Positions 43,777-55,692 of a stretch of 64,000 nt of DNA are shown one piece after another. The stretch spans positions 2,418,001 to 2,482,000 of the forward strand of contig OZ251231.1 in assembly GCA_965240325.2 (NCBI GenBank), in the 5' to 3' direction. The translations under genes and the position numbers were made by a program. Source of the stretch: Rebecca billardiae RCC1528. Lineage: Eukaryota > Protista > Haptophyta. Position 1 is the first letter of the stretch. Every line of letters starts with the position of its first letter. The notes beneath the pieces are model-generated. The model was given only the letters and a program-made list of their open reading frames with translations, was not told the DNA's origin and did no database searches.

Positions 43777-46299
43777 TCAGGCCCTCGTCACCCGCCTGGC
43801 CATCACCACGGGTCGTACATGCGACGGCTCAGTCGATACGACGCTGGCTGTGACCAGCGGCGGCAGCTGCGATGATCGCGGCCGCCACGCTGCCACGACG
43901 TCCGAGGGTGTGGCTGTGCTGCTGGTGCCCTTCCGCTGTCGCTTGCCGGCGCTCACTTCTTTGGTGCTCACGACTTGCTCCAGACCGCGCTTGTGCGCAC
44001 AGCTCCGATGGTGCTTCATGCCGGCCAGCTTGTGCACAGCGCACCGGCTGGCGCGCACGTCACCCGGCATGCCAAAGTAAGGCCGCGTGGTGCAGCCCTC
44101 GTGATCACACTTGGGACTCTTCAGGTCGACCATGCCGGCCAGCTTGTGCGCAGCGCACCGGCTGACGCGCGCGTCGCCCGGCATGCCGAATGAAGGCACC
44201 TTGGTGCAGCCCTCGTGACCGCACTTGGGGTGCTTCAGGTCGACCATGCCGGCCAGCTTGTGCGCAGCGCACCGGCTGACGCGCGCGTCGCCCGGCATGC
44301 CAAAGTAAGGCCGCGTGGTGCAGCCCTCGTGATCACACTTGGGGCTCTTCACGTCGACCATGCCGGCCAGCTTGTGCGCAGCGCACCGGCTGGCGCGCGC
44401 GTCGCCCGGCATGCCAAAGTAAGGCCGCGTGGTGCAGCCCTCGTGATCACACTTGGGGCTCTTCACGTCGACCATGCCGGCCAGCTTATGCGCAGCGCAC
44501 CGGCTGGCGCGCGCGTCGCCCGGCATGCCAAAGTAAGGCCGCGTGGTGCAGCCCTCGTGATCACACTTGGGGCTCTTCACGTCGACCATGCCGGCCAGCT
44601 TGTGCGCAGCGCACCGGCTGACGCGCGCGTCGCCCGGCATGCCGAATGAAGGCACCTTGGTGCAGCCCTCGTGATCACACTTGGAGTTCTTCAGGTCGAC
44701 CATGCCGGCCAGCTTGTGCGCAGCGCACCGGCTGGCGCGCGCGTCGCCCGGCATGCCAAAGTAAGGCCGCGTGGTGCAGCCCTCGTGATCACACTTGGGG
44801 CTCTTCACGTCGACCATGCCGGCCAGCTTGTGCGCAGCGCACCGGCTGGCGCGCACGTCACCCGGCATGCCAAATGAAGGCGCCTTGATGCAGCCCTCGT
44901 GATCACACTTGCGGCTCTTCAGGTCGACCATGCCGGCCAGCTTGTGCGCAGCGCACCGGCTGGCGCGCGCGTCACCCGGCATGCCGAAGTGAGGCCGCGT
45001 GGTGCAGCCGGTGTGATCACACTTGGGGTGCTTCAGGTCGACCATGCCGGCCAGCTTGTGCGCAGCGCACCGGCTGACGCGCGCGTCGCCCGGCATGCCG
45101 AATGAAGGCACCTTGGTGCAGCCCTCGTGACCGCACTTGGGGTGCTTCAGGTCGACCATGCCGGCCAGCTTGTGCGCAGCGCACCGGCTGACGCGCGCGT
45201 CGCCCGGCATGCCAAAGTAAGGCCGCGTGGTGCAGCCCTCGTGATCACACTTGGGGCTCTTCACGTCGACCATGCCGGCCAGCTTGTGCGCAGCGCACCG
45301 GCTGACGCGCGCGTCGCCCGGCATGCCAAAGTAAGGCCGCGTGGTGCAGCCCTCGTGATCACACTTGGGGCTCTTCACGTCGACCATGCCGGCCAGCTTA
45401 TGCGCAGCGCACCGGCTGGCGCGCGCGTCGCCCGGCATGCCAAAGTAAGGCCGCGTGGTGCAGCCCTCGTGATCACACTTGGGGCTCTTCACGTCGACCA
45501 TGCCGGCCAGCTTGTGCGCAGCGCACCGGCTGACGCGCGCGTCGCCCGGCATGCCGAATGAAGGCACCTTGGTGCAGCCCTCGTGATCACACTTGGAGTT
45601 CTTCAGGTCGACCATGCCGGCCAGCTTGTGCGCAGCGCACCGGCTGGCGCGCGCGTCGCCCGGCATGCCAAAGTAAGGCCGCGTGGTGCAGCCCTCGTGA
45701 TCACACTTGGGGCTCTTCACGTCGACCATGCCGGCCAGCTTGTGCGCAGCGCACCGGCTGGCGCGCACGTCACCCGGCATGCCAAATGAAGGCGCCTTGA
45801 TGCAGCCCTCGTGATCACACTTGCGGCTCTTCAGGTCGACCATGCCGGCCAGCTTGTGCGCAGCGCACCGGCTGGCGCGCGCGTCACCCGGCATGCCGAA
45901 GTGAGGCCGCGTGGTGCAGCCGGTGTGATCACACTTGGGGTGCTTCAGGTCGACCATGCCGGCCAGCTTGTGCGCAGCGCACCGGCTGGCGCGCGCGTCA
46001 CCCGGCATGCCGAATGAAGGCACCTTGGTGCAGCCCTCGTGACCGCACTTGGGGTGCTTCAGGTCGACCATGCCGGCCAGCTTGTGCGCAGCGCACCGGC
46101 TGGCGCGCGCGTCACCCGGCATGCCGAAGTGAGGCCGCGTGGTGCAGCCGGTGTGATCGCACTTGCGGCGCTTCAGGTCGACCATGCCGGCCAGCTTGGC
46201 GCACAGGAGCAGCGCCTCGGCCGGCAAGGCGAGATGAGGCGGACGGAACGAGGGCTGCGGGCGTGGCCTGCTGCCGGTGCAGAGCCCCACCCGGCCCAT
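43777..46299 (-). CDS. EsV-1-7-type Cys/His repeat protein, paralog 1 (19 x 38 aa; array 44020..46185)
   Basis: Open frame of [38 protein letters not shown] units with tail GKRQRK. The start is uncertain and the family assignment is from motif recall. Confidence 0.8.
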
Positions 46300-46434
46300 C
46301 ATGTCCAGTCATGGCTGCCGCTTGCGCGCGCCGATTGGAGGCTCGTGCACGCCGACCGCGTACGGCACGGTCCGGAGCGCATGCCGGGTGGTCAAAGCAC
46401 GTGCGTCGGCCTCGTGTCGCTGCGACATAGCACA

Positions 46435-46537
46435 TATATATATATATATATATATATATATATATATATATATATATATATATATATATATATATATATA
46501 TATATATATATATATATATATATATATATATATATAT
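46435..46537. repeat. (TA)n microsatellite
   Basis: Read directly. Confidence 0.95.
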
Positions 46538-53442: not shown

Positions 53443-53721
53443 GTTACGTGAGCACAGAGTCTCAGCGTGCGGTCATCACTGCAGACGGCGCCGCGGCCGC
53501 ACCGCAATTGCACGTCGAATCAGATTCAGATGATTCAGTCGTCACGATCATCAGCTGCAGCACGGCATCATATATATATATATCGTCATCATATTGTCAC
53601 ATGCCGTGATGTAGTCGTGATATATCGTAGCAGTCGTCATGCTGCACCAAGCTAGTTATACGATGACTGCAGTCCAGTATGTATCATCATATCGTCAGCA
53701 CCCGCTGTCAAAGTGAGCTGC

Positions 53722-55692
53722 TCAGGCCCTCACCCGCCTGGCCATCACCACGGGTCGTACATGATGCGACGGCGTCGATACGACGCCGGCTGTGACCAGC
53801 GGTGGCAGCTGCGATGATCGCGGCCGCCACGCTGCCACGACGTCCGAGGGTGTGGCCGTGCTGCTGGTGCGCTTCCGCTGTCGCTTGCCGGCGCTCACTA
53901 CTTTGGTGCTCACGACTTGCTCCAGACCGCGCTTGTGCGCACAGCTCCGATGGTGCTTCATGCCGGCCAGCTTGTGCACAGCGCACCGGCTGGCGCGCAC
54001 GTCACCCGGCATGCCAAAGTGAGGCCGCGTGGTGCAGCCGGTGTGATCACACTTGGGGTTCTTCAGGTCGACCATGCCGGCCAGCTTGTGCGCAGCGCAC
54101 CGGCTGGCGCGCACGTCACCCGGCATGCCAAATGAAGGCACCTTGACGCAGCCCTCGTGATCACACTTGCGGCTCTTCAGGTCGACCATGCCGGCCAGCT
54201 TGTGCGCAGCGCACCGGCTGGCGCGTGCGTCACCTGCCATGCCAAACGACGGCACCTTGGTGCAGCCGGTGTGATCACACTTGGGGTGCTTCAGGTCGAC
54301 CATGCCGGCCAGCGTGTGCGCAGCGCACCGGCTGGCGCGCGCGTCGCCCGGCATGCCAAAGTAAGGCCGCGTGGTGCAGCCCTCGTGATCACACTTGGGG
54401 TGCTTCAGGTCGACCATGCCGGCCCGCTTGTGCGCAGCGCACCGGCTGGCGCGCACGTCACCCGGCATGCCGAATGAAGGCACCTTGGTGCAGCCCTCGT
54501 GATCACACTTGGGGTTCTTCAGGTCGACCATGCCGGCCAGCTTATGCGCAGCGCACCGGCTGACGCGTGCGTCACCCGGCATGCCAAAGTAAGGCCGCGT
54601 GGTGCAGCCCTCGTGATCACACTTGGGACTCTTCAGGTCGACCATACCAGCCAGCTTATGCGCAGCGCACCGGCTGGCGCGTGCGTCACCCGGCATGCCG
54701 AAGTGAGGCCGCGTGGTGCAGCCCTCGTGATCACACTTGGGACTCTTCAGGTCGACCATGCCGGCCAGCGTGTGCGCAGCGCACCGGCTGACGCGCGCGT
54801 CGCCCGGCATGCCGAATGAAGGCACCTTGGTGCAGCCCTCGTGATCACACTTGGGGTGCTTCAGGTCGACCATGCCGGCCAGCGTGTGCGCAGCGCACCG
54901 GCTGGCGCGCGCGTCGCCCGGCATGCCGAAGTGAGGCTGCGTGGTGCAGCCCTCGTGATCACACTTGGGGTGCTTCAGGTCGACCATGCCGGCCAGCTTG
55001 TGCGCAGCGCACCGGCTGGCGCGCACGTCACCCGGCATGCCAAATGAAGGCACCTTGACGCAGCCCTCGTGATCACACTTGCGGCTCTTCAGGTCGACCA
55101 TGCCGGCCAGCTTGTGCGCAGCGCACCGGCTGGCGCGTGCGTCACCTGCCATGCCAAACGACGGCACCTTGGTGCAGCCGGTGTGATCACACTTGGGGTG
55201 CTTCAGGTCGACCATGCCGGCCAGCTTGTGCGCAGCGCACCGGCTGGCGCGCGCGTCACCCGGCATGCCGAAGTGAGGCCGCGTGGTGCAGCCGGTGTGA
55301 TCGCACTTGCGGCGCTTCAGGTCGACCATGCCGGCCAGCTTGGCGCACAGGAGCAGCGCCTCGGCCGGCAAGGCGAGGCCGTGAGGACGGAACGAGGGCT
55401 GCGGTGTGCCGGTGCAGGCGCGTGCCTGCAGCAGCTGCCCACCCGGCCCATCATGTCCAGTCATGGCTGCCGCTTGCGCGCGCCGATTGGAGGCTCGTGC
55501 ACGCCGACCGCGTACGGCACGGTCCGGAGCGCATGCCGGGTGGTCAAAGCACGTGCGTCGGCCTCGTGACCCGCCCTCTGATGGGCTCGTCGGGTCCCTC
55601 CTCACGCTCGAGCCGTGGGCCAGCGTGCACCTTGCGGGTCGGCTGGCGAGCTGCACTGACACGGTGGATGCGCGGCATGGCATGTGCGCCAA
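53722..55692 (-). CDS. EsV-1-7-type repeat protein, paralog 4 (12 repeats; array 53962..55329)
   Basis: Same repeat; 76 aa (two units) longer than paralogs 2 and 3. Confidence 0.8.
   Translation of the reverse strand: MAHMPCRASTVSVQLASRPARCTLAHGSSVRRDPTSPSEGGSRGRRTCFDHPACAPDRAVRGRRARASNRRAQAAAMTGHDGPGGQLLQARACTGTPQPSFRPHGLALPAEALLLCAKLAGMVDLKRRKCDHTGCTTRPHFGMPGDARASRCAAHKLAGMVDLKHPKCDHTGCTKVPSFGMAGDARASRCAAHKLAGMVDLKSRKCDHEGCVKVPSFGMPGDVRASRCAAHKLAGMVDLKHPKCDHEGCTTQPHFGMPGDARASRCAAHTLAGMVDLKHPKCDHEGCTKVPSFGMPGDARVSRCAAHTLAGMVDLKSPKCDHEGCTTRPHFGMPGDARASRCAAHKLAGMVDLKSPKCDHEGCTTRPYFGMPGDARVSRCAAHKLAGMVDLKNPKCDHEGCTKVPSFGMPGDVRASRCAAHKRAGMVDLKHPKCDHEGCTTRPYFGMPGDARASRCAAHTLAGMVDLKHPKCDHTGCTKVPSFGMAGDARASRCAAHKLAGMVDLKSRKCDHEGCVKVPSFGMPGDVRASRCAAHKLAGMVDLKNPKCDHTGCTTRPHFGMPGDVRASRCAVHKLAGMKHHRSCAHKRGLEQVVSTKVVSAGKRQRKRTSSTATPSDVVAAWRPRSSQLPPLVTAGVVSTPSHHVRPVVMARRVRA

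Follow-up and report, generated by a model that had tools for sequence, protein, structure and literature searches.

A haptophyte cluster of four EsV-1-7 repeat genes whose arrays behave as a 114-bp coding minisatellite

The EsV-1-7 family of cysteine-rich repeat proteins is greatly expanded in brown algae, often as tandem gene clusters, and also occurs in giant viruses; among its members is the developmental regulator IMM, whose biochemical function is unsolved (bioRxiv 10.1101/2024.02.19.579948; bioRxiv 10.64898/2026.04.27.720984; PMC7457493; PMC12993054). The papers searched describe no haptophyte EsV-1-7 family. Here, we analyzed a cluster of four genes (P1 to P4) in a window of 64,000 nucleotides from the haptophyte Rebecca billardiae RCC1528 (assembly GCA_965240325.2, contig OZ251231.1, positions 2,418,001 to 2,482,000; coordinates below count from the first letter of this window). 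An earlier reading of the letters without database searches, hereafter the original prediction, had noted a resemblance to EsV-1-7 repeats, for which it knew of no established ligand, and had proposed a programmable recognition system comparable to those of transcription activator-like effectors (TALEs) and PRDM9. Our comparisons identify the genes as new members of the known EsV-1-7 family and not as a new system, and the arrays that they encode behave as a 114-bp coding minisatellite. The statement on ligands agrees with our literature search, which found no paper on an EsV-1-7 ligand, structure or repeat-variable residues.

The arrays lie in four minus-strand open reading frames (ORFs) at 43777-46302, 46686-48428, 50204-51946 and 53722-55692. 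P1 (43777-46302, 841 aa) carries 19 units of 114 bp at 44020-46185. P2 (46686-48200, 504 aa) starts at ATG 48200 in a frame that is open upstream to 48428, and its 10 units occupy 46926-48065. P3 (50204-51718, 504 aa) has 10 units at 50444-51583 and P4 (53722-55464, 580 aa) has 12 units at 53962-55329. Tandem Repeats Finder independently reported the 114-bp period at 44017-46203 (19.2 copies), 46923-48083 (10.2), 50441-51601 (10.2) and 53959-55347 (12.2), with a unit-to-unit match of 89-91% inside each array.

To define the units, the four ORFs were translated and split at the MVD[LV]K anchor. This recovered the 51 in-frame units that had been predicted (19+10+10+12), spaced always by exactly 38 aa. 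The coding frame is free of stops, as claimed at the outset, and it is alone in this, the other five frames containing 1-31 stops per array in every array. The C9, C14, C31 and H34 scaffold is fixed in 51/51 units, and so is H11. On re-translation, the residues at position 19 read H,S,H,S,Y,S,Y,Y,Y,S,H,S,Y,S,Y,Y,Y,S,Y in P1; H,S,S,N,Y,Y,H,S,S,N in P2; H,Y,Y,Y,D,N,Y,S,S,H in P3; and H,S,S,H,S,H,Y,S,Y,S,S,H in P4, the same strings as first reported. Each protein consists of a short N-terminus, 10-19 near-identical 38-aa modules and an 80-aa tail with a KRQRKR motif; the RRK-type first unit and the GKRQRK(R/G) tail, both claimed to be constant, were found in all four. No domain other than the EsV-1-7 repeats was found by Pfam in the four proteins. 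They are basic (pI 9.45-9.75), with a net charge of +2 per unit and a tail that resembles a nuclear localization signal (NLS). The GC content at third codon positions is 0.85.

The assignment to the EsV-1-7 family is supported by sequence profiles and by predicted folds. The Pfam model PF19114 (EsV-1-7 cysteine-rich motif; IPR043822) matched P1 with 860.8 bits over 19 stretches (E 1e-266) and P2 with 444.7 bits over 10 stretches, where the gathering score is 25. A word-seeded search returned 158 homologs, all with PF19114 and the best at 41-59% identity; their named sources are Coccomyxa, Effrenium voratum, Ectocarpus and other brown algae, and uncultured giant viruses. When a four-unit profile was run in a full hidden Markov model scan, 9,457 cluster representatives passed E<=0.001, 2,185 of them at E<=1e-30. 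AFDB clusters matching the four-unit structural model are named EsV-1-7 (E 1e-15 to 1e-9, probability 1.00), and the ESM Atlas assigns the same family, which is abundant in Nucleocytoviricota. Pfam, the AFDB fold clusters and the ESM Atlas therefore bear out the resemblance to EsV-1-7 that had been noted. An exact look-up of the P2 protein in public assemblies gave no record.

Like Ectocarpus IMMEDIATE UPRIGHT and the EsV-1-7 gene of Ectocarpus virus 1, the window units combine C-x4-C-x16-C-x2-H with M-V-D-V, G13, P18, F/Y20, G24, K35 and G38, and they share with the family a period of ~38 aa, a repeat-only architecture and an arrangement in tandem gene clusters (bioRxiv 10.1101/2024.02.19.579948). 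The same cysteine-histidine spacing and period were present in 358 homolog units. The cluster is distinguished by the uniformity of its units: the within-array amino-acid identity is 83-87%, compared with a median of 45% (maximum 79%) among the 55 homologs that have four or more regular units; for 98 further arrays the median is 40% (maximum 83%). It differs as well in its haptophyte host and in having R30 where the family has Y or F, a substitution shared only with a small subgroup that includes the virus-like homologs P0005 and P0028.

P0005 is the closest relative (59% identity, R30 subgroup) and comes from contig Ga0335023_0001299 of JGI metagenome 3300034050 (genes 3452-4777 and 10022-10693). 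This contig is compact (15 kb, 66% GC) and carries a second EsV-1-7 gene, a ribonucleotide reductase (RNR) small subunit and many ORFans. It resembles a high-GC giant virus, a hint that the R30 subgroup has been exchanged between viruses and hosts. P0028, from a Logan contig of run ERR14847148 (gene 763-1716), has 317 aa, 62% within-array identity and ~75% nucleotide identity to the window arrays. The accession of this run is adjacent to ERR14847151, which holds window DNA, and P0028 probably represents an older paralog from the organism of the window or from a close relative of it. Extra domains in homologs were also considered as a clue to function, and this lead was dropped: labels such as 'Vsr endonuclease', 'hemolysin' and 'plastocyanin' had no backing from Pfam, the extra matches being sub-threshold and located on the repeats. 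The AFDB cluster neighbours A0A6C0IY02 and A0A522AIN9 carry the automatic names 'DUF2726 domain-containing protein' and 'Endonuclease', and similar names on other homologs were likewise unconfirmed by Pfam; if true, the fusion of an EsV-1-7 array to a nuclease-type domain would be a DNA-targeting clue.

We then compared the units with one another. The 51 units comprise 31 distinct nucleotide sequences and 27 distinct amino-acid sequences. All the variant strings listed in the original prediction for residues 6-7, 12 and 15-19 are present, but P18 is invariant, so that the last stretch is in fact 15-17 plus 19. Nor is variation confined to the listed sites, as it also occurs at positions 4, 10, 23, 26, 27, 28, 33, 35 and 36, with 26 and 28 varying about as much as 12 and 16. 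The seven sites occur in 22 distinct combinations. At codon 19, all four bases are used in the first position (CAC, TAC, AAC, GAC), in addition to TCA and TCG, and in codon 6 the first two positions pair C/A with G/A in every one of the four possible ways.

The minisatellite-like behaviour that had been claimed is directly visible in P2, P3 and P4, whose arrays differ beside identical flanking coding sequence. The coding parts on either side of the array, 135 nt at the N-terminus and 240 nt at the C-terminus, match at 100% among the three genes, and their noncoding spacer is 98.0-98.7% identical. In the unit-by-unit distance matrix, the end units of these arrays are identical or near-identical and the middles are reshuffled, giving 10, 10 and 12 units. 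Unit 1 of P2 is that of P4; unit 9 of P2 recurs as unit 9 of P3 and unit 11 of P4, and unit 6 of P2 as unit 7 of P3 and unit 9 of P4. In P1, units 3-10 recur as units 11-18 with 1 difference in 912 nt, from which this eight-unit internal duplication is judged very recent. Unit 1 of P3 stands apart with 5 private changes, including R27C. The minimum spanning network of the 31 distinct units takes 112 steps and shows heavy homoplasy, synonymous sites included (codon 20 changes 9 times and codon 24 five times), which points to exchange with breakpoints inside units. Since private variants are few and the shared units are shuffled, the paralogs differ mainly by reshuffling and not by new mutation.

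The cluster itself arose by duplication of a larger segment. P2, P3 and P4 are arranged head to tail with a period of ~3,518 bp, and each duplicated unit is made up of a TA tract, the gene with its 3′ flank of ~150 bp, and an upstream spacer of ~1.9 kb. The 5′ flank and spacer of P2 (48201-49451) correspond, at the spacer identity given above, to 51719-52969 and 55465-56719. The distal part of this segment copies the 3′ end of a gamma-tubulin complex component gene (GCP C-terminal domain, 56368-61461, minus strand), which lies within the duplicated unit: the spacer holds a copy of 55348-56719, including the last ~350 bp of that gene (ORF end 56368). At the far end of the ~3.5-kb unit, 49423-49936 is a 514-bp copy (96%) of 36609-37120, the 3′ end of a ubiquitin-domain gene (ORF 34508-37108), which is copied into the spacers. 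Pseudogene fragments of both flanking genes can thus be recognized within the spacers (48084-49451, 51602-52969 and 55348-56719; 49423-49936). Because the spacers copy the 3′ ends of both flanking genes, the duplication breakpoints must have lain inside those genes, and in the ancestral state one EsV-1-7 gene stood between them.

P1 retains just 115 bp of the common 5′ flank, followed by the TA tract of P2. This tract, (AT)52 at 46434-46537, lies 3′ of P2 and abuts the conserved 115 bp of P1, where P3 and P4 have (TA)7. On the other side, a (TA)47 tract 3′ of P1 (43623-43717) holds the same position as the TA tracts 3′ of P2, P3 and P4. As a TA tract follows every copy, the long tracts around P1 require no mobile-element insertion, and P1 as the cargo of a mobile element was ruled out on this ground. 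A viral insert was ruled out as well, the surrounding genes being ordinary cellular ones of like GC content, which makes the cluster chromosomal host DNA.

To see if the variable positions are peculiar to this locus, we examined the 17 most homogeneous homologous arrays. Positions 6, 19 and 17 were among the five most variable in 13, 10 and 7 of these arrays, respectively, where ~2.5 is expected by chance. The ratio of within-array to between-consensus mismatch was ~1 at positions 5, 6, 17 and 19, compared with 0.2-0.55 at the other loosely conserved positions (10, 22, 23, 25, 26, 29, 32, 36, 37). In a second, independent sample of 24 arrays, positions 5, 17, 6 and 19 were in the top five in 16, 14, 14 and 11 arrays, with ratios of 1.0-1.15. 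The repeat-variable positions therefore belong to the whole family and not just to this locus. At position 6, S, N, H and D together account for 91% of units. The idea of repeat-variable positions thus gains independent support from unrelated homologous arrays, which vary at 5/6, 17 and 19. These may be specificity positions, or they may be the fastest-evolving sites, with small sets of equivalent residues.

Selection was assessed with GY94 codon models on a fixed tree, using likelihood-ratio tests (LRT) against omega (dN/dS) = 1, and separately by minimum-event counts. As the seven sites of the original prediction had been picked post hoc on amino-acid variability, we also tested two sets defined only from the homologous proteins. 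Over all 38 codons, omega was 0.60 by counting and 0.61 by GY94 (p 0.026). The 31 sites outside the seven gave 0.27 (p 0.002) and 0.30 (p 3e-5), respectively, and the seven sites themselves gave 3.9 by GY94 (LRT p 0.011). The larger of the homolog-defined sets, {5, 6, 10, 15, 17, 19}, gave 3.4 (p 0.018), with 0.40 (p 4e-4) at the remaining 32 sites. The scaffold is firmly under purifying selection. This per-codon check, proposed along with the original prediction and run here by site sets, hence supports constraint on the scaffold, but values of omega above 1 are nominal only and depend on the choice of sites.

A four-unit AlphaFold2 model, built from a 42-row alignment and containing no metal, had a mean predicted local distance difference test score of 82.7. 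DSSP assigned to each unit a helix of three residues (32-34) and short strands at positions 20-21 and 30, with a further short strand at 2-3 of the unit that follows. The model fits a small beta-plus-helix finger in which the C9-x4-C14 knuckle and C31/H34 at the helix start would hold one metal ion; a module defined in this way, like that of Pfam, spans C9 to residue 5 of its successor. Judging by the sequence and the DSSP assignments, residues 6-7 (before the knuckle), 12 (inside it) and 15-19 (after it) should be spatial neighbours. The top structural match in Swiss-Prot was to Arabidopsis WRKY19, in its N-terminal repeats (residues 115-237, 25% identity, E 0.08). The WRKY19-type zinc finger repeats (PF24906), found in land plants and giant viruses, co-match some EsV-1-7 homologs below threshold (25.5-25.7 bits on P0019 and P0023, with a cut-off of 27). 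However, the four window units had no match to PF24906 at E<=10, and the relationship is weak.

The cluster was also compared with PRDM9-type and TALE arrays, which the original prediction had invoked. PRDM9 and KRAB zinc-finger arrays are also coding minisatellites (C2H2, 84 bp) of near-identical zinc modules in basic proteins; their copies vary in unit number and order beside identical flanks, and a few polar sites vary on a constrained scaffold. However, the signature here is C2CH with 4/16/2 spacing and not C2H2, and PR/SET, KRAB and SSXRD are absent; Pfam zf-C2H2 did not match the window units even at E<=10. The units here also show ~10% nucleotide divergence, including much synonymous change, with a marginal omega above 1. 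TALEs of Xanthomonas and Ralstonia likewise have long arrays of near-identical ~34-38-aa repeats with polar repeat-variable residues (H, N, S, D), special first and last units and an NLS-like basic tail. In contrast, they are bacterial type III effectors built of metal-free two-helix hairpins, with no sequence or fold relationship to the window proteins; the Pfam TAL_effector model did not match the array proteins, whose model has short strands and one three-residue helix per unit. The defining features of TALEs and of PRDM9 and KRAB zinc-finger proteins were looked for and are absent, so the window genes belong to neither group. What holds of the proposed analogy is the array dynamics and the polar repeat-variable residues; membership in the TALE or PRDM9 families does not.

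Taking these results together, we propose the following scenario. A very recent tandem duplication of a ~3.5-kb segment between the ubiquitin-domain and gamma-tubulin-complex genes gave rise to the cluster. Each module most likely binds one zinc ion through the C9/C14 knuckle and C31/H34 at the start of the short helix, and the M-V-D strand of the following unit is predicted to complete the finger. A small stock of unit variants is reshuffled, duplicated and deleted through unequal exchange and gene conversion, which leave the end units and the coding flanks fixed, and the residues before, inside and after the first cysteine pair (5/6-7, 12, 15-17, 19) are free, or driven, to vary, as they are family-wide. 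These residues may form the ligand-contact patch of each module. The array may then read an extended polymer, most likely a nucleic acid, in the nucleus, with the different unit orders of the paralogs giving different targets; the isoelectric points and charge per unit given above suggest the nucleic acid, and the KRQRKR tail suggests the nuclear location. We see the chances as evenly divided on the arrays being modular binders of an extended ligand, probably a nucleic acid. A true recognition code read unit by unit is a further step that we think quite improbable. It would place EsV-1-7 arrays beside C2H2 and TALE/PPR-type proteins as a third class of modular polymer readers with an independent origin, with residues 5/6, 17 and 19 around the zinc knuckle specifying a short stretch of DNA or RNA, and the alga and giant viruses would gain specificities by module reshuffling, for example in a virus-host or transposon-control arms race. 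A role against viruses or transposons, as the original prediction suggested, is pure conjecture.

Several results weigh against the proposal of modular nucleic-acid binders. Our literature search found no report of nucleic-acid binding by any EsV-1-7 member. The PDB gave no significant fold match (best Foldseek E 3.3; best VIA Z 2.7, to RING/B-box), and a sequence-profile search of the PDB found no solved structure. The signal of diversifying selection at the variable sites is suggestive but insecure, chiefly since the units recombine and so break the tree assumption of the omega tests; in addition, the seven sites gave an omega of 1.9 (p 0.12) by minimum-event counting, and the smaller homolog-defined set, {6, 17, 19}, gave 2.3 (p 0.18) by GY94. 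The nine private nucleotide variants are 4 nonsynonymous to 5 synonymous, with one at a variable site. Positions 16, 17 and 19 are tightly linked (normalised mutual information 0.7-0.9), which reduces the combinatorial space, so that much of the apparent hypervariability comes down to two unit classes, x-K-V/A-P-S and T-T/A-R/Q-P-Y/H/N/D, with positions 6, 7 and 12 toggling on top. At position 6, single mutational steps connect S, N, H and D, and these could be interchangeable turn-forming residues that vary neutrally. In P1, an indel near the N-terminus has left the ancestral P2-type ATG (46312) out of frame with the array, and it would yield a 66-aa peptide; the array ORF opens at ATG 46302, 10 nt downstream. 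P1 may as a result be poorly translated, and it may rely on leaky scanning or be heading to inactivation.

Searches of public sequencing runs gave no evidence of expression. No RNA sequencing runs were listed as matching 6 kb of the locus, and a search of runs of any type with one gene returned three runs from one sample, of unspecified kind. Read mapping over 46540-50440 yielded short contig fragments only, from a single public run. Word depth was 38-64 over the array units but 1.7-2.6 over the unique 5′ flank, and the spacer had none; the run looks like low-coverage DNA with collapsed repeats. The ~20x higher word depth on the array units than on the unique flank is consistent with many genome-wide copies of the unit, of which it is not independent proof.

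Other explanations were considered for the same observations. The arrays could serve as scaffolds for protein-protein interaction, comparable to the ankyrin, FNIP, MORN and BTB repeats amplified in giant viruses and their hosts, with the variable patch contacting proteins such as viral or host regulators. The abundance of the family in Nucleocytoviricota fits this explanation, as do the virus-like contig of the closest relative (59%), with its second EsV-1-7 gene and RNR small subunit, and the Ectocarpus family members without another Pfam domain (bioRxiv 10.64898/2026.04.27.720984). For single units, the only fold matches, weak ones, point to RING and B-box fingers, which typically bind proteins, but they are far below significance (Z under 3), and a pI of 9.5-9.8, a charge of +2 per unit and an NLS-like tail would rather be expected of proteins that bind nucleic acids. 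We consider a scaffold unlikely, though a serious candidate. Alternatively, the genes could be functional and the order of modules and the variable residues carry no specificity, the least-constrained surface or linker sites simply saturating fast under neutral minisatellite dynamics. Each variable site of the window is indeed of high entropy family-wide, the excess of omega over 1 is not robust, the singletons show no nonsynonymous bias (4:5), homoplasy at synonymous sites is high, indicating recombination, and both the two linked classes at 16/17/19 and the single-step neighbourhood at position 6 could be accounted for. Neutrality would not readily explain, however, why the family-variable positions 5, 8, 11, 22, 25, 29, 32 and 37 are fixed in 51/51 units, or why the mismatch ratio in homologs singles out 5/6/17/19 in two independent samples. 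Moreover, codon 19 uses four first-position bases with no synonymous third-position variant among its H/Y/N/D codons, and the maximum-likelihood omega is 3.4-3.9 (p 0.01-0.02) in two of the three site sets. We rate purely neutral turnover as rather unlikely.

A nonfunctional cluster, made of unexpressed, decaying copies of a recently acquired giant-virus gene or of mobile-element cargo bounded by (TA)n, appears most improbable. It would agree with the empty RNA-run search, the out-of-frame ancestral start of P1, the private changes in unit 1 of P3 (R27C among the 5), the virus-like contig of the closest relative and the position of P1 between two long TA tracts. Yet 51 units in four genes are free of stops and frameshifts, the omega of the scaffold is 0.3, and the coding flanks are 100% identical where the noncoding spacer has diverged by 1.3-2%. 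The neighbours are ordinary cellular genes (NMD3, TatD, bestrophin, ODAD1, GCP) of like GC, the TA tract 3′ of each copy belongs to the duplicated unit and does not mark an insertion, and the boundaries of that unit lie inside both flanking host genes.

In brown algae the EsV-1-7 domain ranks with the largest of the expanded families; it is also common in giant viruses, and the developmental regulator IMM is built on it. What is new here is the haptophyte host, the extreme uniformity of the units, the array-swap series formed by P2, P3 and P4, and the family-wide variable positions. Because P2, P3 and P4 differ only in their arrays, they offer a natural series in which to ask which ligand the modules bind and if unit order matters, and the variability of 5/6, 17 and 19 in otherwise homogenised arrays gives a concrete hypothesis for mutagenesis and structural work. 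If the arrays were sequence-specific readers, they would provide a new programmable scaffold; if they are not, the locus is still a clean case of a coding minisatellite outpacing its flanks in evolution.

The rest of the window holds ordinary eukaryotic genes. Long uninterrupted ORFs encode NMD3, TatD, bestrophin, Ulp1, the ubiquitin-domain protein, ODAD1, the gamma-tubulin-complex component and a RAP-domain protein, and the nearest named relative of the TatD protein, which is itself present in the public collection, is in Diacronema lutheri (54% identity), in keeping with a haptophyte host that is perhaps close to the Pavlovophyceae. A Logan contig from run ERR14847151 is colinear with 18674-22241 at 99.97% identity. 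The GC content of the window is 61-85%, falling to 51% at 40-42 kb, the site of dinucleotide microsatellites. Between the ubiquitin-domain gene and P1 (37434-43700), there are several long dinucleotide microsatellites (AC, AT, TA) and direct repeats of ~400 bp at 42033-42623. At 58001-62000, GC reaches 82-86% inside ORF 56368-61461, most of whose 1,697 codons have no Pfam match; this ORF is either an extremely GC-rich, low-complexity coding region or over-extended.

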